Assembly (NCBI GenBank): GCA_965649765.1
Contig: OZ287756.1
Location: 930,001 to 994,000, forward strand
Reading direction: 5' to 3'
Source of the DNA: Bispira polyomma
Lineage: Eukaryota
Length of the DNA stretch: 64,000 nucleotides
The notes under the pieces were generated by a model, which saw nothing but the letters and a program-made list of their open reading frames with translations, ran no database searches and had not been told where the DNA came from. Shown here piece by piece: positions 1,035 through 19,716 of this stretch (within the stretch, counting starts at the first letter, position 1; each line of letters opens with the position of its first letter). A program made the position numbers and the translations under genes.

Positions 1035-2019
1035 CTTATCAATATAGGCACATTAAAAATAATTGTTGGAAAATTGAAAGTATTTTCAGAAGAGAACTAT
1101 TTTTCCTTTGATTAGGTCTAAAGTGAAAATTTACTGACAACAACCACTTTTTAACCTTAACCCTAACATATTGTATCTCTTAAGACTTTGTTTCAGGATG
1201 AAACATCAATCCTAACCTTAATGCTTCAACAAAATAATAACAATACAACTTAATGTACTACATACTAGATAGTAAAATTTTTCCCTGTCAATCCACACAT
1301 CCTTATCATCTTTTTAGGTCACATACTAAACTTTGGTGTGTCTGCATTATTGATATGACCTCACAGTGGAACTGGCGGTGTGCGGAGTGTGCTGGAACAC
1401 ACCAGATGACAAGCAAACAATAGTTAACAAATTGCCGGCCATTTCAGCCCAGTCATAAACAAACCACTCCTTATCCAACCGAGTGAATCTCTCACTGAGA
1501 AATCAGAATAAAAAATAGTGAAAAAGAAACCAATGCGCTCGGGCTTTAGTTCTATTTTGAGGTTCAGTGATAGACACTAGGATTGGAGGTTATTTACTGG
1601 CTGGGCAGTGTTTGTGGGCGATTAGTTGATAAGTAACATTGTGTTTGGGGGTTGAAATAATTATATGAGAGTATGACATGGGTAGTAGGGTCCAAACACA
1701 CTAGGTGTGATCAGGCAGGGTGGGGGAGTGGCACTCAAACATCAGTAGGTGGTGGAGATTTATGTCATATAATCAGGAAAAGGCTGAGGTCTCACTGTGT
1801 TCATTACCTGAACTGAATTAAAAGTGTAGAATATATTCTATAAATATTAGAAGATGTTCATGAAACAAAAAGAAAATGTAAATTTAGAGAGTGAAAGAGA
1901 GTGCATCAAACTGTATTGTATTCAAATATTAGAAGTCCAGTGGTTTCTAAATATGTGCTGATTTAGCTACCTGCACAAATCTTAGAATTATAATTAGTTT
2001 AGAATGCAGTACCTTGAGC

Positions 2020-2133
2020 AACTGGTAAGCACTGCTTACCACCAGTCAGACTGGTTGTTGTGGCATGGCTTATACAATGTGTTGTAAGAGACGTTTAACC
2101 CCAATTAATCAATCAATCAATCAATCAATCAAT
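2020..2133 (+). mobile_element. 3' fragment of a SINE ending in a (CAAT)n tail
   Basis: tatacaatgtgttgtaagagacgtttaaccccaa followed by (aatc)n; a similar tail occurs at 57610-57648. Confidence 0.55.
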
Positions 2134-5100
2134 AGAAGTATAATTTACAATAGACACATGATGATACCAGTGAGAACCAACTTGTCCGACTAAAATAAAT
2201 CATGTCAAATCTCTGTTAATATTGGATAACTCATATGTCATAGAAAGATTCCATTCTAAACTACCAGATATCTAAAGTACACTGGCTCTGTTTTTACTTC
2301 CCGCTGTAAAAAGGAAGGTTGGGGCTAGCCAGCTTTTAATTGTCACCTAACATGAAACAAAAAGATATAAAGGAGGAGAACAGACTTGTCTGTAAAAAGA
2401 CCTGGGACTAAATACTAAGCAAATAAGTCATGACAAAGACAGTCTGATGTATAGAGAAAAACCCAAAAAAAAAACATCAGCTCTTTGAGGCTCTCAGAAA
2501 ACCAAGCAGCCAGTGTGGCGATAAGAATGAATTGAATCCAAAAAACAAGGCCAAAAAGGGTTTAATTCGATAGGGTGTCTGGAAGAAATGACAAATTGGG
2601 GGTGGGGGAACTAAGACCCTCAGTATAATAAATAAGGGTGGCAATGAACCAGTAAAAAACACCAAAACTATACTCGAGTCTTGCACACTTTTTCTTCTGT
2701 GCTAAATACAGGCATTTTGTTGCTTTAATTAGGTGACTTTTTTCCTAAATGTGTTTCAGTGTAAAGGATATGTTTCTATGGCAACAGAGTTTGATAGGAA
2801 ATCTCTTAAGAACAATGGAGATTTTCTTCCTATACTGGGCCTTAGTAGTAGGTACAGTGATTTGAACAGAATAAAACTTATTATGTAAGACAACGTTTTA
2901 AGACCTTTAATTAAAAATCTATTAACGTATTTTAAACTTTAAAAAATGGTGACAGATAAACCAGTTGCCAACTATTTAAAAAGATATTTTATGATTAATT
3001 TTATAATTATTTATCATATGGAATAGCATATTTCCATGTTGATACTTACAATATTGATCTTTTTACATATAAAATTGAAAATATTATGGTATCGATAAGT
3101 GGTCCCAAACTCCAAAACCAATATATCTATTTAAAGTCAGCTAGTTCTGAACAAGTTCATACTTCAAGATAAGTTTCTAAATGCAGAGTCAAGAAGTTTT
3201 AACTTATCACAGAAGTACAGATTTTCCACAGCATAAATAAAGAACTCAAAAGGGAAGTTGTTACCTAGTATGATATGCATATTTTGTCGCTAAGGAGTTA
3301 CAATTTTTTACATTGCAATCTGTTTACAAAACTTGCCTGACTGCCCTAGTGTCTCTTAATTTGAACTACCCGTCAATAAGGTCACATGGATACATTGATT
3401 AGAGTCAATATGTTCTGATTATTCTCTACAGTTATCTACCTGTACACAAACGACCTCAGGTAAAACTGTCAAAGTAGGTCACGAACTACAAAAATATAGT
3501 AGTTTCCATGTAAACATATTTTTTGAGGAGAAGAAAAAATATATTTTTTTTTTCTATGATTAGTACTAAATTAGAAATTTACTCCACTGACTACCACTAT
3601 TTCTTGTGTCAGTAACAAATTATCCAATCTTCTCTTTGTTAATCAAAAGGAAAGTGCCTCAATGACAAAATTGTCACATGTGTGGTGTGAAAATACAGAG
3701 AACATCTTCATTTCTGGATTATGTTAATATTAACTTTAACGTAAAACAGTGGTCTAGTTAGAATCTTCTGGAGCATTAATAAAAATAGTTTGGTATTTAA
3801 TGTAAATGTATGTATTATTAGCTGTAACATAACAAAAACAAAAGTTAAATTGATGTATTCTATGTATTGTTAACTGTAACATAACAGAAACAAAAGTTAA
3901 ATTGATGTATTCTATGTATTAAAACAGTGTATTTTTCTTTCTTTTCGTTTTTTTTTTCTTTTGTTTTTTGTATTACTATGTTACTGAGGATAAATTAAAA
4001 AGAAAAAACCTGATCCCCAAGATTTCTCTGACCCAATGCACTGATAGACTGTTTGTGCTGTTACACTCATGACATCTACAAATGACAGGGTCTTTTACAA
4101 CTAACCTCTCTCATGTGTTATTACTACTTTAATATTTGAGTCACTAATATTTCTAGAGTGATAAATCACCCAACTAACCAGTAATTTGTTCCAATTGACC
4201 TTATTTGATCTTCACAACATTTTGGCCATAGAAATATACATGTACTTTACTGTATTAAGCTGCATAAACAAGGTGGCCTGGTGATCAAAAGTTCCCTTGT
4301 TTGACTCCCTGTCATTCTTATAGTGGTTGCTTGGTAAAAATATCTTTGGGCAAGATCTGATCACCCTGTTAACTACACGTAACTATTAATTTATCTCTTA
4401 AAATTTTGTCACAGAGAGAAAAAAAAGCTTTTGAGGATTAAACATCAATCCTAATACTAATGCTTCAAGAATAAAATGCTGAAATTAATTCTTTATATAC
4501 TATCGTAGTAAAATATTTCCCAGTCAATCCACAAATCCTTCCCATCGGTTTAGCTCACATACTAAGCTCCAGTGTGTGCATTAAACTGTCAGTGTTCGGA
4601 GTGTGTTGGAACAGACCAGATGACAGGCCCAACAATAACTAACAAACTGCTGACCATTTTAGCCATGCCATAAACAATTCACTACTTACCTAAGTGAGTG
4701 ACTCTCACATGGAAATCAGAATGAAAATATAGAGACAAAACATGCAAAAGAAACCAATGCCTTGTGGGTGGATTGAGTCCTATTTTGGGGTTTAGTGATA
4801 AACATCAGCTGGGGTGATTTAGTGGGGGAGGGTTGTGTGTGAGGGGGAGAGGAGGGGCTAATAATACATTTGGGGTGTATAGAAGACTGTAAATATTATA
4901 TAAGATTATAACATTTATGAGAAAACCAAAACACACTATTTGTGGTCATGCAGGGTGGAGGAGTGGTACTCAAACACTGGTAGGTGGTGAAGATTTAGGT
5001 CATATCATCATAAAAGGGCTGATCTCTCACTGTGTTCATTACCTGAAGTAAAATAAAAGTGTAAGATAGGTTCTATGAACATAATATTATGTTGCCTTTA

Positions 5101-5234
5101 ACAGAAAGAAAAGATGTCATCAAAGTGTCTCAAATTATAATGACCACAAATACCCATTGATACAACATCTTTGAATGTATGTCCTTATCTTATAGTACCA
5201 GACTTTGTTTACATATTGGAATTTGTGTTGAGGG

Positions 5235-5248
5235 GTTACCATGGTAAC
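5235..5248. promoter_or_regulatory. RFX X-box palindrome (related boxes near 2772 and 6033)
   Basis: GTTACCATGGTAAC is a perfect X-box; GTTTCTATGGCAAC is retained in both duplicated blocks. Confidence 0.45.
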
Positions 5249-6701
5249 AACTGCTATTTACTCTGTATTACTGTACGACCTCCGACTTCAATAAGCTCCA
5301 GGCGGGAGGAGGTTCTAGGTTAAAACACTGACATGGTAAGCATGTATTTGACGAAAATATATAATTTCATTGGTTTCAATAAAAGTATGTGTCCATTTTA
5401 CATCAATTCTATTCCATACATGGTGAAAACCGGTAATACAACAAACTTGCCTTGAAAGTAAATCATAAAAACCTCCTATTGTATTAGATACCATATATAT
5501 CACAAACAGATTCCATTCTAAACTACCAGATATCTAAAGTACACTGATACTGTATTTACCAGCTTTTGATCGTCACCTAATGTTAAACAAAATTATGTCA
5601 TAGAGGAGAACAGACTGAGAATAAATGCTATGCAAAAATGTCATGACACAAAAACAGTCTGTTGTACATAAAAACCAGAATCAGGTATTCGAGGTCCTAA
5701 CAAAATGAACAGCCATTATGGTGATGAGAATAAATTGAATTTGACTCAATACCTCTACAGTTTACCTCTACCCCCTAACCCAAACAGTGAGGGTTCAACT
5801 CAACACTGTGTCTGGAAGAAATGGGAAAAATTGGAAGGGGACAAACCGATCTTCTCAACTCAACAGATATGTTGTTGTTCAAAACATAAGGTTGGCAAAG
5901 AACCAGTAAAAACAGCACTTGGTCTGGAGATACTACACTAGACCTACACACGTTCTTTTCTAAGCTAATTACAGTCACTTTTTTGCTTTAATTAGGTGAC
6001 TTTTTGCTAGATCTGTTTCAGTGTAAGGGATATGTTTCTATGGCAACATACTTTGATTTAGAATTTTTATACAGAATAATGGCGATTTCCTGCCCCTAGT
6101 TGACCTTGTTCTTAGGTACAGTGACCTGAACAGGATAACACATTGGCATTTAGATGTTGTTTACAATGACATTCTACTGAGAAATCTATCATTATATTTC
6201 AAATTAAATGTTTTAAATAAGATCTTTCATAATTAATTTGATGAAAATTAATAAAATATGATAGCATATTTCATAATAATACGTTTTATATACCATATGT
6301 AGCACAATTCGCACATCTTTCCTATATTTTTACCTCACATACTTAACTCATGTGTAGGGTCTGCATTATTGATATGACTTTACGGTGGAACTGACTGTGT
6401 GCTCGAAAAAACCTGATGACAGTTCAACAATGACTAACAAACTACCAGCCATTTCAGCCTCGCCATAAACAAACCACTTCCCACTCCATAAACCCACCAG
6501 AAAGACTTCAGCAACTGGAATTCAGACTAAAAATTAGGAATTTGGACAAAGCATGTCAAAATAAATGTCCCTGGTTGGAGGGCTGTGTGTGTGAGGGATG
6601 GGGAGGGGCAGGAGTGATAAATAAATTTGTGTATTGTGTATTGTAGATATTATATGGGAGTAGGACACGGATGGGAGAGTCCAAACACTCTGGGTGTGGT
6701 C

Positions 6702-8330
6702 AGGCAGGGTGGGGGTCGGGAGAGGCACTAAAGCACTACTAGATGGAGGTGATTTATGTCCTGTAATCATTAACACTTTTTTCGTCAACTGAACTAAATT
6801 GTAGAAGTATCAACTATAACATCTGAACATGTTATCAGAAAAAGTTTGTGTTTGGATATTTAAAGCTATTCAGGAAACTGAAGGGGCTTCTTATTATTAA
6901 ACAATCTGATCATGTACATTTGGGAAAGAGAGTCGAAATAATAAAAGTTTAGAGGTTTCAATCCGGTTCTCCATATTCGTACTACCTGTACAAAGCTATC
7001 TTCCCAAGGACTGGTAAATGGGTAAACAGTTCTTGTAAAGATTTAGCATCTGGTTACTTCATGTGAACAAATATGGAATAAAAATATAGTGTAAAGTAAA
7101 AAAAATAAACCAGCAAGCGTTGCAATTAAAAAAACAGTGGAAGCTACATTCAGAAAACTTTGTGTAATATCAGGCTTTCAAATAATGACGTATATATGTA
7201 TTAAAAATTGCTTATTGCCTGACATAGCTGTGTATTTCTTATGCTTAGTATAATCTGGGATCTTGTCAATAAATTTACATATTGTGTTGGCAATAAAGTA
7301 TTTCGAGTAAATATGATTTGTTTGCCAGTGTATCACCGATACCCATTGAGATGGTTCCTTTCAGTGAAGGTCCTTATCTTATGTTGGCAGTCTTTTGGGA
7401 GATTTGTGTTGAGAGCTTGTGACAACGGGTGTTCACTGTGTGTTACTGTACAATATCCATCTCCATTGCATTCCAGACAGGAGGAGAGTTATACGTCACA
7501 CAATACACTTCCTATTCCAGAACAAAAGCTACATCTCAACTAGGACAGTTTAATGAGTAACATTCAGGACTAATTAGAACTGATCACGAGCGGCTCTTCT
7601 GTTTCCACAAAGTTCAATTGTATCCGGCAAAATGTTTCTACCACGAAAAACAGTCAGGGTTTTAGTTAATGAGGAGTTTGCATGTGGAATGGCTGTAAGT
7701 TGTTGACAGTGTGATGGGTGGAGAAAAAAATTCCTTCTCATAAATTAAGAGATATAAAATATATATACACTCACATATACAGTCATTCATACATATATAC
7801 ATCCAGCCATACATGGTGATGAGTGGAAGGAGAATTCCTTCTCATAAATAAAGAGATATAATAAATATCTAGACAGCCTTATATACAATCAGACATATAA
7901 TCTAGCCCCACACGGTGATGAGTGGGGGAAGTGTTAGTCATAAATAAAGACATATAAAATAAATATATAGACAGCCATATATATAACCAGACATATAATC
8001 ATAAAATGTGATGATTTAGGGAGAGTCGTTTGTCATATATCTACAGATATAGAGTAAGTGTAAAGACAACCATACAATCAGCCATCTACATCTAGCCACA
8101 CAGGGTGATAAGTTATAGCTGAAGGGATTGCTGTAATAAAAACAATGGACAGAAACAAAGTAGGGCGGTATAATGGTATCTATAAGAACAAAGAAACTTA
8201 TACATATACAAAGATCTAGAGTCAGTACTGCAGTAAACTGGGTGATACAATGATACATCAAACTAAATAGACAGTATCATGTACAATCACCCATACAATA
8301 ACTTATACCATTGGTAACCTTTTAACATTG
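6702..8330 (+). repeat. Host segment duplicated on both sides of the Ngaro element (left copy)
   Basis: Roughly 97% identical by eye to 14349-15278; ends exactly at the element terminus (taacattg|cagtcg). Confidence 0.95.
7710..8110. repeat. Degenerate ~100-bp minisatellite, 3-4 copies
   Basis: ggtgatgagtgg...ctcataaataaagagatata recurs at about 7711, 7815 and 7915. Confidence 0.7.
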
Positions 8331-8518
8331 CAGTCGCTTTCAAAAGTGGGTATATGACCTTCAAGGTCAGAGGTGATGACCTTGCAGGTTAGGAATTATG
8401 ATTGTAACCTTGAGTTGATAAATTTGATGCAGTTTGGGATAAATTTTATTATCATCAATAAAATTTCTATATACAGCTCTATACAAAAATTTTAAGATTA
8501 AAATTTTTAGAAAATGCC
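8331..8518 (-). repeat. Split direct repeat B2 (3' terminus of the element)
   Basis: 184/188 identical to 9338-9525; contains AATAAA on the - strand and the palindrome TGACCTTcAAGGTCA. Confidence 0.95.
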
Positions 8519-8892
8519 TGTCATGTAAACATGGCAAGTAATTACTTGGAGTGTAAGTTCTCCTTACAAATAAAATAATAAAATTACTTTAAAACATGCA
8601 TTATAGCAAGTATGGCCAACCTAGACCTATAACAAATAGTAATATTAAGAACATTTATATAAGCTTTGTAAAATAAAATGTTATTAAGCATACGGCTTGA
8701 TGTGAGTTCTTGTACTCAAGTATTATTTGTGGTATTTGCTAAACGCTAATATGTGCGTTTTCAAGATGGCCATTGTACAGCCTACATTTATGTCAAGATT
8801 GGCTGTCATACAGCTTGTAAGTGATGAGCCATTTGTGGTTTAGGTAACTTTGCTGTTTGTCAGTACATTATGTTTAGTGGTACGTCAATTTC

Positions 8893-9078
8893 TATCTCAA
8901 ACGAAATCTCCACCCAGATTGGAACCCGGGTCCTATGGCACCTATTCGCCTAGCAGTGAAGGTCCTCAGCTGCAGAGCTTTAATCCCCGGTAGCCCACAC
9001 CAGGGGGTAGTTGCAAGCTGAGGACCAGCACCACACGGATCCGGGGTCGAATCTGTTGGTGGGGACACTCGAGATATA
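8893..9078. ncRNA. Putative structured RNA (or ssDNA) element inside the Ngaro element
   Basis: GC-rich island with nested complementary arms: tctccacccagattggaacccgggtcc / ggatccggggtcgaatctgttggtgggga, ggtcctcagctgca / tgcaagctgaggacc, and tccccggt / accaggggg. Confidence 0.6.
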
Positions 9079-9133
9079 TATAAAGACAAGTTTTCGACCA
9101 TACTAAGTTAAGGGTGGTGGGTAGGGTGAAATA

Positions 9134-9337
9134 TTTTACTTGTTGTCTCGTTGCTTTCAAATTTTATAATGCTAACATAATAGGAAAGGCGGGAAAACGC
9201 CCAGGAATCAAAGTATTTAATTGGTCTTAATCTGCCATTTGATTGGCTTTAGGTTGGTATACAAATAATCGAACAGTAAACTTCTACTTTTTAGCACCTG
9301 AAATGCCATGCGAACTTAAGGTCTGCAGTGACGTTCA
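9134..9337 (-). promoter_or_regulatory. Repeat A2: promoter-like (2x CCAAT, E2F-like TTTTCCCGCC, TATAAAA)
   Basis: On the - strand: CCAAT near 9246 and 9224, TTTTCCCGCC near 9197-9188, TATAAAA at 9168-9162, about 30 nt before the end of A1/A2 identity. Confidence 0.6.
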
Positions 9338-9525
9338 CAGTCGCTTTCAAAAGTGGGTATATGACCTTCAAGGTCAGAGGTGATGACCTTGCAGGTTAGG
9401 AATTATGATTGTGACCTTGAGTTGATAAATTTGATGCAGTTTGGGATAAATTTTATTGTCATCAATAAAATTTCTATATACAGCTCTATACAAAAATTTT
9501 AAGGTTAAAATTTTTGGAAAATGCC
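9338..9525 (-). repeat. Split direct repeat B1
   Basis: Direct repeat of 8331-8518, starting 55 nt after the YR stop codon. Confidence 0.95.
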
Positions 9526-9579
9526 AAAGCCAATAGCAGCAAAGGTGGTAGGGATAATTGAAGCTGGATGAGAGGTAGC

Positions 9580-10494
9580 TTAAAGGTATGACCAAACTGC
9601 ATTAGATTTCCAACAACCATGTTTTTGTATGTGTTGTAACTTAATGTTAGAATTAGAAGCTAGTGAAGCACCTGATCTTCTAAAACAATGGAATGAGTGA
9701 CCTTCATGTGGTATTTGACTCTGTGTAAGTGTGTGTTTAAGGGCAAGCCTTAGTTTTGAATCTGTGAGGCATTTGTCTTGTTGTGTTGGATCAGCCAACA
9801 GTGGGGCTGTATCTTTCAGTGGGTATTTTTGAAACAACTGTGTAACTGTCTTAACTGGGTACAGCCAGTGGTTGCTTAATTCTGGGAGTTGTATAATATC
9901 AGGTGTATTTCTGCTTTGGTTGGTTTTCGACCATTTCAATATCAGGTGTATTCCTGGTGGGTGCAAAAATTATATCTGACCTTGTTATGTGTCGAGTTTG
10001 GTCAAAATCTACACCAGAGGTAGTTGTTAGGTTTGAAATTCTTAAGAAACCAAAGAATGCAAAAAGAAATGCTGTCCTGAACAGCTCAGGAAAGTGTAAT
10101 GAGTTACAATTTTTTGAAATCTGTTGTAATTGATGTAAATCAAAGACACCTTTGACCTTTGGTGTAAAGTTTGAGGTGAGTTGTAGTGACTTCAAATATA
10201 ATGATAACCTTTGGTCATATAGGCCAGTTTGGTGCATGTTGAAAACTTTACAGTTGTGTCTGAGGGCTGAAAGGTAGTTATTTATCACTTGATAAGAAAT
10301 TCCAGTTTGTGTCAGGAATTCAAGGAAGGCTATTATGCTGGTATAGCCAAAAGTGTCCTTAAAATCATAATATATGGTGAAACTCAAGAATAATCTAAAT
10401 TGATTGTCATATAATCTTGTCGTACGTGGTCTAAGGCTTTGTCGTATCCTTTCTCCTGCTGTCTGTACTAGACGTCTAGCTATAGCTGGTGTAT
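9580..10494 (-). pseudogene. Tyrosine recombinase of the Ngaro element (one frameshift near 9955)
   Basis: Catalytic residues R (GFLRISNL), K (WSKTNQ), HxxR (HCFRRSGA), W (GCWKS) and Y (WSYL), split over ORFs 9899-10387 and 9580-9966; the frame stays open to about 10500. Confidence 0.92.
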
Positions 10495-10505
10495 CTGAAA
10501 ATATA

Positions 10506-12267
10506 TTATATTTCTGTGTCCATTATAAACATGTCAATTAGTATGTCTTTAATGTCCAAGTTACCTAATGGTAAGTTTTCCTTATGCTGTCCATAATGTC
10601 CTGATTCGTACCACCTAGATAGTGTGTCGGCTATTGTGTTATCCTTTCCAGGGATATGCGCTATCATTAGGCCAATATTTTGGTGAGCACACAACAGCCA
10701 CATATTCCTTAAACATAGTCCTAAAAATTCGTCTCGTGTCCTGGATGAGCTAACAACAGCCACCACTGCCATATTGTCTGATAAAACTTTTATCTTTTTG
10801 TTTTTCCATTCGGGTGACCACAGTTTTAGTGCTATTAGTACACTTACCATTTCAAAATGTACTATAGTTAGGGTTTGAGTCAAAAATATTGGTAGTGCTG
10901 TCTTAAATGCTTTGTTTCCAGATACTCCACCAATACCTGTTAAGCAAGCGTCTACCTGAAAGAGTACTTCATGGGTTTTGTTTTTGAAGCTGTATTTAGT
11001 CGTTCCATTAAATTTTAGCAGGAATTTAATGAACCACTGTAAGTCCTTAAAATTACTATCCAAATGAATTTTTGCACTACTTTTTGAATTCCTTAACAAA
11101 GATAGCATGCGACACACATCTGTGTACATAGAGGAGTTTACCCAAGAGGGACTGATACTTGTATTTGGGTACTTTGGTTAGATTTTCAAAAGTGATACAT
11201 TCTTTATATATTGAAACCAATTTATCTTGATCTATACTCAATGTTTCTTCATTGACATCAATGGTTATACCCATGCAGGTAACCTGTTTACTGGGTGGCA
11301 CAAGTTTCTTTTTGTTAATGGGTAAACATAGGTCATTTAGAAGTTGTTGTAACGTTATGTATGCTAAATCTGCTGTGTTTTCATTTTCTATGATAAGAAA
11401 ATCGTCTATGTAGTTAAAGACTGTGAAACCTTTTTGTTTCATAATGAATCTTATTGTGTCTGATGCCATCATAAAAATGGTAGTGCCATGAGTTAATCCA
11501 AAAGTTAGGCTTAAATCTATGTAGTGTCTGTCTTTCCAAAAATAACCTAATTTTAAACAATCAAATGGATCCATTCTTAAATTTCTAAACGCATGCGCAA
11601 CGTCCACCTTTGCTATGGTAGCTGATTCACCTAAATTTTTAATATGAGTAGTGATCATGTCGATGGTGGGTAATCTTAAGTCAAATCTGACACCGTCATA
11701 TTCAGTCTTTACTGTACAATCATTCACTGAATGCCCCTTTGGGTATGACAGGTCTAAAATTAGTCTCCTTTGGTCAGTGTCCTTAGGTCTGGTCAGTAGA
11801 GGTGAACAATGTAGGTCTTCATGTAAATGTTCATTATTTGCTTCTATAATAGTACCTTTTGTAATTTCTGTCAAAAAATATCTATCAATTTCTTTAGGAA
11901 AAATTTTTGCTGAATAACGATTTTTGAGATATTTTTGTTTTATTCTATCTCTCTCGTATATTGAAATAGGGAAACCAAATTCCAAATATTGTAGTAGGAT
12001 TTGATTTGGGTAATCTCTTAAATGTTTCTTCCAATTGTCTATATTTAGATTACATTCAATTGGGATTCGTGATACTTTGTAGTTTGGCTGTTTTGTTCGC
12101 TTTATCGTTTCAGCTATGTTGACTAATTTTTCATAAGAATTTATGTTCACACTCTGTCTGGTTGGTCCTATGAATTGGAAGTCTTTAAAGCTACAAGGGA
12201 CAAAACCATAAGCCCTTTCCTTATTGTCCTTTTTATAATAGTCTTCATTTTCTAACACTGTTTCCAA
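10506..12267 (-). pseudogene. Reverse transcriptase + RNase H of the Ngaro element (frameshift near 11110)
   Basis: RLILDLSYP, AKVDVAHAFR, YIDLSLTFG and YIDDF RT motifs; VDACLTGIGG, HFEM, SDNMAVV and HIPGKDNTIADTLSR RNase H motifs. Confidence 0.95.
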
Positions 12268-12365
12268 GTATGTCAGTCCTTTGAAGTCTGGCTCCTTATT
12301 GGAGTCCTGTATGACTATGTTGTCCTGTTTTGTTATAATGTCCTCGTTTTTGTGTGATTTTTGTT

Positions 12366-12887
12366 CTAAATCATAATGTTGTGATAGAAGTTTTTATGTG
12401 TTATTTCTTTCTTTTGTGTATGTTTGTGTGTGTGTTCATTTGTCTGCTGTTGGCATGTTTTATCAATGATATTTAAGTAATAATCAGTATTACTCATTTT
12501 TGTTCTTGTGTGTGTGTTTCTATTTGTGTTTGTAAACTGTTGTCTTTTGAAACTGTTATTCTTTATAACAGTGGTCTTTGTAATAATCTCAGTTCTAATG
12601 GTGGTAACATATGTGACTGGCCACATGTGTTGAAGTTTCTTATTTGTCATGTTAAAATTCTGTTGGTCGTCCTTATATGTTAAGTTATAAACTCCTGAAA
12701 AACATGCATCACTTTGATATACAATATAATACAATGGTTCCATGACACTGTGTGGCTGTCCACTGGTCATGTGGATATCAATGTTAGAAAACTTTTTACT
12801 ATCTTTAAGTTCATTGTCAATCTCAGAATTATCTGAGTTAAAAGTAGCTTCATTAACACTGCTACTTTCATTGTCATTACATTTCAT
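12366..12887 (-). pseudogene. N/T/K-rich low-complexity ORF, probably the N-terminal extension of pol
   Basis: Lies between gag and RT on the element strand; no recognisable domain. Confidence 0.45.
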
Positions 12888-13049
12888 TGTTATTATATTA
12901 TCAAATGAATTAAAATGGTTCTCATTGTTCGTCCTTAACTTTTTGTGAATTTCATTGTCATATACTGTGTTAATTTTTGAACTCTCCCTTTAACTATTAT
13001 ACACTGACGTATCGACCCTGGTGGTGCTGGCTGATGTTAGCTGGATGTC

Positions 13050-14155
13050 CTATTGAGTAGTCGTTGTTCCTGGCTTTCCATGTAGCTTATAACATTTACT
13101 TTCAAGGTGAGGATTGAACCTCTTGTTGACCTTAAAACAATTCGCACAAGCGTGTTTGAAGGTTGCTGTCGCCCCCTCATGGTCTCCTTTGTGTTGGCAT
13201 TGGCCTTTCTGGAAATGCTTACAGGGGAGTTCTAGTTTCTTTGTAGACGAAGTGACGTCAGACGTGGAGGCGCTCGATAGTAGCGCTTGAGAGTAGGATA
13301 GACGATTCATTGTCCATCTGTTATCTTCAGTCCAAGTTAGGCGACCCTCTTCAATATCATGCATATTTGAAGCGTATGCACCGCGTGCTACTTGCCAAGA
13401 AATATTACCAGCTTCTTTTAAGGTATCGGCGAGGTGCTTTAGCATAGCTCTGGAAGTTACTGGGTTTTACACTTCTAAAGCATTCTGAAGTTGTCCGGCT
13501 GCGAATTGTGCCACTGTTAATTCGTCGTAAGATACACGTTTCTTACTGACTCCAGCGAGACATCCCTCATTTGGCCACCTTAGCGATGGATCAGTGGTGC
13601 AAATTTCAGAGACGTTAAACCGGCCTGATTTACGTTTTGCAGAAAGCAGCTTACCTTGGAAAGTTTCGTCGTTCGCCCAAACTCCATACTGTGCTAACCT
13701 TTGGCTGACTATTGTTTTAAAACTTCTGTGCTGGGGATGATGCTGTCTTGTAGAGCACGTTGTGGAAAGGTGTCTCCTATTGGTTGTTGTACTGTTGTAA
13801 GTTCACTCCTGGGGTTCGGTTCGACTGCGACTGGTTGTTTGTGTACATTAGATGTGTCATTTTTAAGGCTAGAGACGTCCTCTTGCAATTTTGAAACTGT
13901 TTTTACTAGCATTTCCATCATGGATTGTTGCCTTTCATAGCCTTCTCGATAGAAATCTCTTTCACTTTGTGTATCTGCCCTCTCGAGAGAGTCTACTACG
14001 GGGGAAGTATCTTCATCAACCATACTCATAGTACTGTGTAAGACGTTTTCTCCAGTATTCAGCTTACAACTGATTCCGACGGGGCGTTCGTGTACAATAG
14101 CACACCTTGAGCACAAAGCCGTTTCGGTCATGTTTCTTTTCTTTCCACGACCCAT
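13050..14155 (-). pseudogene. gag-like ORF1 of the Ngaro element
   Basis: N-terminal CxxC-x3-H-x7-C knuckle, coiled coil, YDELTVAQFAAG segment and C-terminal CKHFQKGQC...HACANC zinc fingers; frameshift near 13710 and stop near 13468. Confidence 0.85.
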
Positions 14156-14348
14156 AACTCAAAATTAATAGTACATATAATGTAAAATATCAATCATAAA
14201 ATCTTATTCTATAACAGAAAAATTAAAAACCTTATGTAAAACACACTAAAATCACTTGAGTTTGTAAAATATTTCATAAAATCCAATATGGCTTCCTTTT
14301 CTTCAAATTTTTTACTTGTTGTCTCGTTGCTTTCAAATTTTATAATAA

Positions 14349-15278
14349 AGGCAGGGTGGGGGTCGGGAGAGGCACTAAAGCACTACTAGATGGAGGTGAT
14401 TTATGTCCTGCAATCATTAACACTTTTTTCGTCAACTGTACTAAATTGTAGAAGTATCAACTATAACATCTGAACATGTTATCAGAAAAAGTTTGTGTTT
14501 GGATATTTAAAGCTATTCAGGAAACTGAAGGGGCTTATTATTAAACAATCTGATCATGTACATTTGGGAAAGAGAGTCGAAATAATAAAAGTTTAGAGGT
14601 TTCAATCGGGTTCTCCATATTTGTACTACCTGTACAAAGCTATCTTCCCGAGGACTGGTAAATGGGTAAACAGTTCTTGTAAATATTTAGCATCTGGTTA
14701 CTTCATGTGAACAAATATGGAATAAAAATATAGTGTAAAGTAAAAAAAATAAACCAGCAAGCTTTGCAATTAAAAAAAACAGTGGAAGCTACATTCAGCA
14801 AACTTGGTGTAATATCAGGCTTTCAAATAATGACGTATATATGTATTAAAAATTGCTTATTGCCTGACATAGCTGTGTATTTCTTATGTTTAGTACAATC
14901 TGGGATCTTGTCAATAAATATACATATTGTGTTGGCAATGAAGTATTTCGAGTAAATACGATTTGTTTGCCAGTGTGCCACCGATACCCATTGAGATGGC
15001 TCCTTTCAGTGAAGGTCCTTATCTTATGTTGGCAGTCTTTTGGGGGATTTGGGTGATAAGTTATAGCTGAAGGGATTGCTGTAATAAAAACAATGGACAG
15101 AAACAAAGTAGGGCGGTATAATGGTATCTATAAGAACAGAGAAACTTAAACATATACAAAGATCTAGAGTCAGTACTGCAGTAAACTGGGTAATACAATG
15201 ATACATCAAACTAAATAGACAGTATCATGTACAATCACCCATACAATAACTTATACCATTGGTAACCTTTTAACATTG
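14349..15278 (+). repeat. Right copy of the flanking host duplication, with a ~700-bp internal deletion and the empty insertion site
   Basis: Matches 6702-7406 joined to 8103-8330, then continues into unique DNA (taacattg|ttttcg). Confidence 0.95.
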
Positions 15279-18200
15279 TTTTCGCAGAATAAAAAGATGT
15301 AAAAAGAGAAATCTAACCTCATACAATCGCCACAGTGATCTGACTTAAGGTTGACATGGTGGGCTGCTTATCTTTCAAATACCAGTATATTGGCTCTCTG
15401 GTTTACTTGCTTAATAGTAAAACGTATCATTGTTTTGCATTTGTCTTAAAGCGGAGGGACTATAATTAAAGAATGTTAAAGGACTAAACAAAGTTGATAT
15501 GTGGGGTCTTAAATATTGTTAAAAATAATTATATAAGATATCGGGATGGTTTTTTAAAACAGTTCATTGAATTGTACAGTCTTATCTGCATTGTTATACA
15601 ATTATACATGTCATTTTTTTAACATTGCAAATACTGACTGAAAGAAACCTTTTTCCAAAACATTTACCGATTTCCAGATACATTTGAAATATTTGGGTTT
15701 AGTCATCCAATAATCTCTCAAAATGGGTAACAGAAAATATTTACTTCATATAGTAAGGAATTCACTATCTGTGGTAAGGTATCAGAGTGCAAAGCAAGTC
15801 TGGATCCACCCTATACAGGTCGCTTTCAAAATTTAAAAAGGATTCATCCATTGCCTATACTGCATCATACACCCAGATCTCATGCAAATCAGTTCAGCAC
15901 TGTTTGTGTGACTCCTTGTATCAACAAAATAAAATAGGCTAATGAAACTAATAAAGTTCAACCACTTCCTGGAGGTTACAGATACGCTGAAATAAACACC
16001 CACTCATAGACTGTGTCAATCATCAATACATTGATACATATAACCACAGTTACCTAACATATGGAACCATTTACAACATCACCACAAATACTGAAATACA
16101 TTTTGAAATGTCAATTATGACATTCAGATCAGATATTCTATTCAAAGAAATGGACTGACACATGATATTTTAGTTAATTATTAAATTTAGGAGATTATAA
16201 ATATATCATATTAGTATAACACGCAGTAATTTTTGTTTTTACTGTCTTTTGGGCATAAGGTCACCTTATAGCAATATGTACAAAATGTTCTCATGCCGTG
16301 TACTTTACTCACATTAAAATTATTTAAACTTAACTATTCCGAATTTATTAAAGGTCACCTCTGGTTTCACTTTAGGCTGTGTTAAACTCTTGGTGACCTT
16401 ACAACTGACTTAAGGTGGCCTTACACCTCTAGTTATGGTGGCTTAGCCCTCACCTTTAGGTGTCCTTCGCCATCATGCTAATGTGACCTTATGGCCATAT
16501 TAAACTTAACTGCATATATACATAGAGCTTAATGTTAATGTTACAGCTTAGCTTAGTAACTAATAAAAGTTCAACCACATTTCTTTTACTATCACTGGTG
16601 TTTTATAAATCATCTATGTCACTGAACCCCAAGGTACTGAGATCAGATATATTATTCAAAGAAACAGGTACATAATCATACCCAGGGGGGAAAAGTGGAA
16701 CAGGTATAATCCCCCATGAAATAGAACACTTATTCACAATAACAGTCTACCTGTGTAATTATAGAAACATTGCTCCAATTACTGGACCAATGATACTGGT
16801 GTAGCTTCAAGTGGCCATTTGTCTGTGATGTGTCTCTTTCCCCCACTCAGGTGAAACATCCCCTGTGTAACTACTAGAGATAGATGTCATTGTAGTAGAC
16901 TAATCATGACTAATGTAATCACTTAATTGGATCCTTACACAAGCTAGTGAGGGTATTTTATCAAAGCTTCTCATATTTCAATCTCACAATGATCTCAAAC
17001 TATGTTCTGTTGTATATTTGTGTACAAAAAAGCTCTATAAAATCTATATGTTTGAGGTTATTTTAAAATGGATGTCTGAACTATTCTTATAAATAAAGTT
17101 TAGGTTAGGGTTGGGTTAAAGTTCTCTGAAATAGGACGATATGTTTGAGGTTATATTGAGATCAATAGTAACATGTCTGAACTATTTTCATTAATAAAAT
17201 AATCTTCTCATGTGTGTGCTGTTTGAATTTAAGTATGAGCATAAGTTTAAAAACTTTGATGTATTCAATACCTTATTTAAGAACACCATTGTATATGGGG
17301 TATTACACATCTATCATTCACACAGCAGGCATGGGTTACATGAAACCTTCTTCCCTTATATTTTCCTCATATTTTCGTTTGTTTACATACAAGATGTTGT
17401 CGTTCTAGTCTAATCAATCGTTCTTACTACATGTAAAAATGGACTATTTGACTATTCCTAACAACTATCAAATTATGTGACCGTTAGGGTAGCTTAGCTT
17501 TTTAGAACAAATACATTTCGGGAATGAAAGGAAATGAACAATCTTGTTGGTAAATAACTTCTATATTTACAAAATATCACGTAAGTATCCTTTTGCATTG
17601 TTTCAGACTTTCGTATATAACAGGTCCTCCACAAAGTGATAACCAACCATTCCATGAAATGCAGGTTCAAATTGTGAATAAAATGACGCTTAGTATAATA
17701 GCACATTACTCTGCAAGCATTCCACAATTCCCCTCCAAAATATCCTGCTGGATGCGACCTTCCACCTAGATCAGCTCCTATATTTTAATGGGTTATATTT
17801 TGGAGTCTCTCCACCAAATTTTATATCAAACACTTTAATTCAGGTGTAACATAATATCTACTATCGCCTTTGCAAAGGATGAAACATGACTTTGGGAATT
17901 GCATATTGGACCTATAAAAGTCTAGTTTTCAACCACTTTGTTCATGATACAATATTGATGATGAGTTTGTGTGAGTGTGGTGTTGAGTGGTTCGTTGTGT
18001 TGACAGCTGGTGGTGATGAGCTAACTCAATTAACTAGAGGCAATGACTCCCACTAATGGGGCACAAAGGGGGTTTGTGGGTGAAGGTCACACTTACAGGT
18101 TGCTTACATATATTAATTAATGTGTCTGATTTATTGTACCACCAATGTAGAACTCAAGTAGAATCAGTAAATATCACGGAACAGTCTATAGACTGGTTTA

Positions 18201-18906: not shown

Positions 18907-19162
18907 ACAAGGAATGATAGTAATGTAAATATTTATATATACCTCTTTGGTGTATTAGATCTTGTTCATTAGATAAGTCATATTATTTTAGATTGGACAT
19001 AAATACATTCAGCCCCATGTGTCTTAGTGTACAGATATGTCCCATTCCCAAAATGTGTACGTATATATTAAGGTGCAGTTGGTATCAACATTCTAGAAAT
19101 CTTTTCTGACAACCTAACCACCCTCTTCTTGTGGTTAAAGATGATGTAAGCATGTTCTGCAG

Positions 19163-19716
19163 TTTTGTTTTATATTTCAGATTGTATTGTTGCTATGTGG
19201 TCACTTTTATATCAAGTATGATTGTATTATGTTTTATATTGCAGATTTCATTGTTACTATGTGGTGTTGGTAACCTTTATAATAAGTATGATTGTATTTT
19301 GTTTTATATTGCAGATTTCATTGTTATTATGTGATGTTAGTAACCTTTATAATAAGTATGGATGTATTTGTTTTATATTGCAGATTTCATTGTTACTATG
19401 TGGTGTTAGCGACCTTTATATCAAGTATGATGTATTTTGTTTTGTATTGCAGATTTCATTGTTACTATGTGGTGTTAGTGACCTTTTAATCAAGTATGAT
19501 TATATTTTGTTTTGTATTGCAGATTTCATTGTTACTATGTGGTGTTGGTGACCTTTAGAATAAGTATGATTGTATTTTGTTTTATATTGCAGATTTCATT
19601 GTTACTATGTGGTGTTGGTAACCTTTATAACAAGTATGATTGTATTCTGTTTTATATTGCAGATTTCATTGTTACTATGTGGTGAACTTTAGAATAAGTA
19701 TGATTGTATTTTGTTT
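19163..19716 (+). repeat. 70-bp minisatellite, ~8 copies, each with a splice-acceptor-like tract
   Basis: Unit ttgtattttgttttatattgcag ATTTCATTGTTACTATGTGGTGTTG gtaacctttataataagtatga. Confidence 0.95.

Follow-up and report, generated by a model that had tools for sequence, protein, structure and literature searches.

Ngaro retrotransposons, described from zebrafish, Xenopus and Cafeteria, carry split direct repeats in the order A1-[ORFs]-B1A2B2, accompanied by solo AB repeats (PMC9210276, PMC8547959). The lack of a methyltransferase separates Ngaro from DIRS1 and PAT. For the DIRS order, to which Ngaro belongs, neither the start of reverse transcription nor the choice of the template RNA is understood (PMC7192593). 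[quoted passage not shown]

Analysis of the window, the whole stretch of 64,000 nucleotides considered here, revealed on its minus strand an element of the Ngaro type. In its family, the split direct repeats comprise A1, at the 5' end, and B1, A2 and B2, downstream of the recombinase; B2 does not directly follow A2. The segment that parts them (u) appears to be the normal non-coding 3' spacer of a clade of Ngaro-type tyrosine recombinase (YR) retrotransposons and to hold two conserved cis elements. A C-rich box directly after A2, common to several assemblies, would be the first of these; a large hairpin, restricted to some of the families of this genome, would be the second.

Architecture of the element and its spacer

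The order of the parts (Table 1) was obtained by self-comparison of positions 6000-16500 and by direct reading of the minus strand. B1 and B2 showed 97.9% identity across 188 nt in the window, and 55 nt separate the recombinase stop codon of this copy from the start of B1. The RVT_1 match of the window ORF lies above the Pfam cut-off; the RVT_3 match is weak in the window and above the cut-off in L032, a better-preserved copy. For the YR ORF of L032, similarity to Phage_integrase spans positions 5-160 of the 172-position profile, at an E-value of 1.2e-3 that does not reach the Pfam cut-off. Searching ENA assemblies with the L032 recombinase revealed 13 homologues, and those in other assemblies carry PF00589 and PF02899. 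Neither the ORFs of the window copy nor those of L032 gave a Pfam match to a methyltransferase domain, an absence that counts as weak evidence.

Table 1. Parts of the Ngaro-type element and sequence motifs, numbered from the first letter of the window
Feature	Position	Strand	Remarks
Remnant A1	14305-14346	minus	Last 42 nt of A, including the TATA-like box; 97.6% identical to 9129-9170
Internal region	9526-14304	minus	ORFs in seven pieces in the window copy
gag-like ORF piece	13709-14155	minus	Within the internal region
RT	11077-12267	minus	Pfam RVT_1, E=4.4e-10
RNase H-like	10506-11129	minus	Pfam RVT_3, E=1.4e-3
Putative tyrosine recombinase (YR)	about 10441-9532	minus	L032 YR aligns to the window in two frames
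Repeat B1	9338-9525	minus	AATAAA at 9457-9452
Repeat A2, 209 nt	9129-9337	minus	Two CCAAT, E2F-like site, TATAAAA
CCAAT (two) in A2	9246-9242, 9224-9220	minus	Direct reading
E2F-like site in A2	9197-9188	minus	Direct reading
TATAAAA in A2	9168-9162	minus	33 nt before the end of A
Unique segment u, about 615 nt	9128-8519	minus	Between A2 and B2
C-rich box opening u	9107-9128	minus	Near-invariant across subfamilies of the window's family
Long imperfect hairpin, ~180 nt	8896-9076	minus	Fold, cross-family alignment, pair counts
Ultra-conserved core of the hairpin, ~125 nt	about 8919-9045	minus	Borders from loose ends
A+T-rich rest of u	8519-8895	minus	Not conserved between families; without conserved ORF
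Repeat B2	8331-8518	minus	AATAAA at 8450-8445; element ends ...ACTG at 8331

The initial annotation had read the order A1-ORFs-B1-A2-u-B2 from this locus. For the window copy, the B1-A2-u-B2 part of this reading stands, but a complete A1 does not: only its last 42 nt are left, and the missing part has been replaced by an unrelated repeat of 930 bp. The two copies of this direct repeat (97-98% identical) bracket the whole element, at 14349-15278 and at 8103-8330 plus 6702-7406. The upstream copy meets the A1 remnant at a short microhomology; the downstream copy is split by a 696-bp insert, which contains tandem repeats of ~100 bp (7711-8000). Because none of the other element copies examined has the 930-bp repeat, it was assigned to the flank rather than to the element, and the locus was concluded to have been rearranged after insertion. 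The end of the 930-bp repeat belongs to a series of local repeat units of ~3.2 kb, 75-89% identical, found at 1191-6272 and 6397-6715. A tandem array with a 70-bp period is located at 19130-19716 (six 169-nt copies in register).

As the layout of the family, the full order was borne out, and the proposed check of other genomic copies and related families showed the A2-u-B2 layout to be conserved. The unique segment recurs in the genome at 68-96% identity, and B1-A2-u-B2 was present in all copies that retain the coding region. Two loci, L032 and L034, have a full-length A1 (204-209 nt) that leads directly into the ORF region, and u was never found after A1; u is therefore not a part of full-length A1. 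Six solo A-u-B units were detected that run precisely from the first base of A to the last base of B (the equivalents of 9337 and 8331), and no target-site duplication was present at any of the six. Their simplest origin would be recombination between A1 and A2, that is, as deletion products. A secondary insertion of u was rejected on the presence of u in all copies examined, on the exact solo A-u-B units and on the spacers of the relatives described below. A coding spacer was likewise rejected, since tblastx revealed no conserved frame between families and gave multi-frame matches only between two subfamilies of one family (c3); an ATG-to-stop ORF of 40 or more codons was present in u in one of six representatives. 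By these comparisons, u is a non-coding segment that regularly belongs to the element and is inherited with it.

Several smaller features were noted at the borders of the element. A 13-nt all-purine run directly follows A1 (14291-14303 in the window, 2905-2917 in L032) and was not seen in the relatives from other assemblies. The B1|A2 junction (9325-9345 in the window) forms, in the window's family, an imperfect palindrome of two 6-nt arms around a 3-nt spacer. This palindrome is a candidate core site of the recombinase, and the same junction was considered in L069-L072. The elements end in ...ACTG, and the 5' flanks of the insertions end in TT in six of seven cases.

Among the loci encoding the homologues of the L032 recombinase, five from two other assemblies (L069-L073) showed clean split direct repeats with A2-B2 spacers of 403, 339, 429, 145 and 145 bp, and the C-rich box opens the spacer in all five. 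Within the window's family, the box is near-invariant even between subfamilies that are 68-77% identical over u. For these reasons, the spaced A2...B2 arrangement is a feature of the clade rather than a peculiarity of the window copy.

The motifs of the repeats were evaluated across copies. Two CCAAT boxes, an E2F-like site and a TATAAAA about 30 nt before the end of A had been placed correctly in the initial annotation, the actual distance of TATAAAA being 33 nt, and the AATAAA claimed for the sense strand of B is present in both B1 and B2. TATAAAA, CCAAT and AATAAA are frequent by background in the window (0.4-1.3 per kb per strand at 36% G+C), so that only the conservation of the motifs carries weight. 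Both CCAAT boxes were kept in 13 of 13 family copies and the E2F-like site in 10 of 13; a TATA-like box occurs at the same place in all eight family copies inspected there. AATAAA is found at position 65-70 of B in nearly all of the 13 copies, and 65-78 nt into B in four families. A is, as far as its sequence tells, a conserved promoter-like repeat, and B carries a conserved poly(A) signal.

In the reading of the initial annotation, A2 would serve as a second promoter and B2 as its terminator, yielding a separate ncRNA of ~0.7 kb that would act in trans as primer, template-switch or packaging RNA. The predicted RNA would start near 9138 at the C-rich box, include the hairpin and end near 8425. 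In favour of it, A2 repeats the promoter-like sequence in full, including the conserved CCAAT, E2F-like and TATA-like boxes, identity between A1 and A2 stops ~33 nt past the TATA box, and B2 holds the conserved AATAAA; the C-rich box, moreover, lies exactly at the expected start in elements from three assemblies. In the relatives, however, anything between 14 and 45 nt separates the TATA box from the end of A, and the distribution of the hairpin, given below, also bears on this proposal.

Structure and probable strand of the spacer hairpin

The large hairpin that had been predicted in u is real. The whole of u folds at -165.8 kcal/mol (z = -6.2 against shuffled sequences), and the fold is dominated by one long rod. 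Folded alone, the representative of each family formed the same rod at -77 to -89 kcal/mol. RNAalifold reported nine pairs with compensatory changes. A 72-pair model, which was taken from the window sequence and favours it somewhat, was compared with versions in which the partners were slid by one to three columns: 88% of the cells were paired, versus at most 49% in the slid versions. Double-change cells numbered 147 versus at most 52, and the covariation score was 0.186 versus at most 0.082. The outer stems are wholly different between families yet still complementary. These results support structural constraint on the hairpin, with a stem backed by compensatory changes.

To assign a strand, the two orientations were compared. 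The consensus fold reached -47.7 kcal/mol in the sense and -24.3 kcal/mol in the antisense orientation. Counts of G-U versus A-C cells were 501 versus 95 in a sense-derived model, which is biased towards sense; an unbiased arm-to-arm comparison gave 67 G-T-type versus 41 A-C-type mismatches. The mean single-sequence fold was -80 kcal/mol for sense and -77 kcal/mol for antisense. The hairpin likely acts as a sense-strand RNA, the evidence for the strand being modest.

Action as DNA, through a cruciform or a fold of single-stranded cDNA that serves as recombinase site or second-strand origin, was considered as well and is very improbable. Bacterial tyrosine recombinases use folded single strands, and the two strands of the hairpin fold almost equally well singly, both of which speak for it. 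DIRS-order YR elements also go through single-stranded cDNA (PMC7192593). Against these points, A opens the element and B closes it, the hairpin forms neither end, and it is intact in every insertion. The consensus fold, moreover, prefers the sense strand, and the minus-strand cDNA would have the weaker, A-C-mismatched version.

The hairpin was compared with known RNAs. With Rfam covariance models, 9 kb gave nothing relevant at E up to 1. When the 251-nt core was scanned at E up to 10, the sole match resembled mir-22, lay on the opposite strand and fell below threshold; a known RNA family or self-cleaving ribozyme was set aside because no Rfam match was found. T-arm-like words occur in the arms, and TGG opens the apex. 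A tRNA or primer-binding-site origin was nevertheless rejected, as ARAGORN detected no tRNA and a pattern search for a host tRNA gene with a 3' end complementary to the hairpin apex returned only a copy of the core. A Pol III unit was dismissed because the families share neither the B-box-like word nor the T-run that follows the hairpin. A literature search for the core words of the hairpin found no paper.

Distribution of the hairpin among element families

The apical 31-mer of the core gave at least 175 genome matches at up to two mismatches, versus none for the reversed control, and about 200 nt of u recur in many other places of the genome. In three DNA-like runs, with short contigs over the whole element, the core was ~30-40 times deeper than its flanks; in the same runs, the sequence diverges at 8919-8922 and 9039-9045, the borders of the core. 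A recognisable apical motif was present in 57 of 59 sampled loci, and clustering with the window copy gave five families and one solitary locus, L048. Within this sample, which is biased towards copies containing the hairpin, 57 of 59 hairpin copies lie inside the five YR-element families (c1, c1b, c2, c3 and c4). L048 (G000:C2:80242957-80245987) is a free-standing hairpin with its own outer stem and a direct repeat of ~22 nt at its flanks; it adjoins tandem repeats of ~160 bp, and no RT or YR was found within 1.4 kb. A first look at the genome (1.04 Gb) yielded 13,066 candidate tyrosine recombinases; open frames of 330-350 codons were frequent among them, and YR retrotransposons are unusually abundant in this genome. 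Given over 13,000 candidates, the families with the hairpin form a minority.

The core is 84-96% identical across the five families, the recombinases of which are only 30-67% identical. In c1, c1b, c2 and c3, the hairpin lies between the members of a B1...B2 pair (157-220 nt), and the recombinase ORF stops a short distance upstream of this pair; the recombinases of c1b, c2 and c3 are 40-67% identical to that of c1, and the rest of the module beyond the hairpin is barely alignable between families. In c4, a gap of ~530 nt separates the RNase H ORF from the recombinase ORF; the hairpin is positioned in this gap, and neither A nor B adjoins it. The core of c4 is 93-96% identical to that of c1, while the recombinases are 30% identical (RT, 42%).

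The c4 arrangement implies that the hairpin can be carried in a long RNA without a cassette of its own, and the hairpin is thus found at two different places of the predicted long RNA. Its role would accordingly be independent of a separate promoter-terminator cassette. This speaks against the ~0.7-kb RNA introduced above, as does the finding that relatives have spacers of 145-429 bp without the hairpin, so that a hairpin RNA is no general requirement of Ngaro. A dedicated trans-acting RNA is therefore considered unlikely. If A2 is active, an RNA of this size may nevertheless arise as a natural by-product, and the two tandem cassettes would be a conceivable outcome of A2 repeating the promoter rather than a demonstrated design.

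Seven loci from other assemblies were searched for the hairpin by BLAST and with a covariance model (R1) built from 31 hairpin copies, and it was found in none of them by either method. Since these closest relatives lack it, the hairpin is not essential to Ngaro replication. A recombinase tree, which holds unnamed relatives only and no named reference Ngaro RT or YR sequences, showed hairpin families interleaved with hairpin-less relatives: P0001 grouped with c1 and c1b, and P0002 and P0003 with c2 and c3. At least three changes of the hairpin label are needed on this tree. The near-identical core in diverged families, together with its absence from closer relatives elsewhere, is best explained by exchange of the hairpin module between families residing in the same genome, followed by retention. 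Compensatory change in the outer stems points to selection for the fold after transfer. Non-coding modules thus appear able to move between retrotransposon families inside one genome.

The hairpin could also be a selfish or passively carried module, by origin a small foldback, a MITE-like element or a piece of captured host sequence. It would have got into the master copies of several families and would hitch-hike there with no benefit to the retrotransposon, the covariation of the arms reflecting paired terminal inverted repeats or chance. The patchy spread on the tree, the different position in c4, the ~22-nt repeats flanking the solitary copy and the near-identity of the core in very diverged families are all compatible with such a module. 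We consider it improbable, however, because nearly all sampled copies (57 of 59) lie within YR elements and occupy the same position in u in four families. The asymmetric bulge and the loops are strongly conserved, which would be unexpected for inverted repeats, and the outer stems differ by family while remaining complementary. Young copies, with B1 and B2 99% identical, also keep the hairpin intact.

Proposed role and comparison with known systems

From the observed layout, conservation, covariation and distribution we infer that the hairpin may act as RNA and in cis. It is plausible, if somewhat short of probable, that it is a cis-acting structured module of the read-through genomic RNA that has spread among the resident families. 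Transcripts from the A1 promoter that stop at the poly(A) signal of B1 would be plain mRNAs; only those reading through to B2 would carry B1-A2, which is needed to rebuild the ends of the element. The same read-through RNAs would carry the hairpin along, which could thereby mark replication-competent genomic RNA for a protein. Candidate partners are the element's own Gag or RT, in packaging or RT recruitment, and a host factor, in export or stability, by analogy with the retroviral constitutive transport element. A common partner, for example a host factor, would account for the near-invariance across families more readily than a protein specific to one family. Co-evolution with the proteins of the element would be expected of a packaging signal, and the high identity of the core (93-96%) beside recombinases of 30% identity argues against such a signal. 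A narrower version, in which the hairpin is a portable module that is passed among the Ngaro-type elements of the host and docks their genomic RNA onto one conserved protein of host or element, is rather doubtful.

If this narrower version is true, the hairpin would be the first defined cis-acting replication signal (for packaging, export or the start of reverse transcription) of tyrosine-recombinase retrotransposons, and the C-rich box after A2 a second, clade-wide signal. The covariation-backed hairpin and the box at the A2 border offer two concrete targets for the question of priming and template choice.

Among the cis-acting RNA elements known from the 3' non-coding region of retroviruses and their kin are the constitutive transport element (simian type D retroviruses) and the RNA transport element (murine IAP elements). 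The hairpin resembles these by analogy only: it is a long imperfect hairpin in the range of 150-230 nt with conserved internal loops, it would travel in genomic RNA that is not spliced, it can occupy different places in that RNA, and a host partner, not a protein of the element, would hold its sequence fixed. In sequence and by Rfam, there is no similarity to them.

The hairpin proposed for DIRS-1, as far as the account cited in PMC7192593 goes, likewise belongs to the 3' part of the RNA of a YR retrotransposon, in an order for which the primer is unknown. That hairpin, however, is 14 nt long and located at the very 3' end, whereas the hairpin of the Ngaro spacer is ~180 nt long and positioned ~450 nt upstream of the expected poly(A) site, and the c4 hairpin is situated in the middle of the element. 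In VIPER/SIRE of trypanosomes, as here, the end sequences of a YR retroelement also occur as a short, abundant stand-alone unit (PMC6681497, PMC7192593); the solo A-u-B units of the present family, in contrast, would most simply be products of A1 x A2 deletion.

The element was also compared with Ngaro itself, with which it shares the order of Gag-like, RT, RNase H and putative YR regions, the absence of a methyltransferase match, a 5'-terminal A, a 3'-terminal B1-A2...B2 and the lack of a target-site duplication. Its solo units recall solo LTRs and resemble the solo AB repeats of the Cafeteria Ngaro elements (PMC8547959). No description of a C-rich box or hairpin in the spacer was found in the Ngaro/DIRS literature consulted (PMC9210276, PMC8547959, PMC7192593). 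Unlike in described Ngaro elements, A2 and B2 are parted by a conserved spacer, ~615 bp here and 145-429 bp in the relatives, which opens with the C-rich box and in this genome holds the large conserved hairpin. The textbook B1A2B2 cartoon thus hides a regular spacer.
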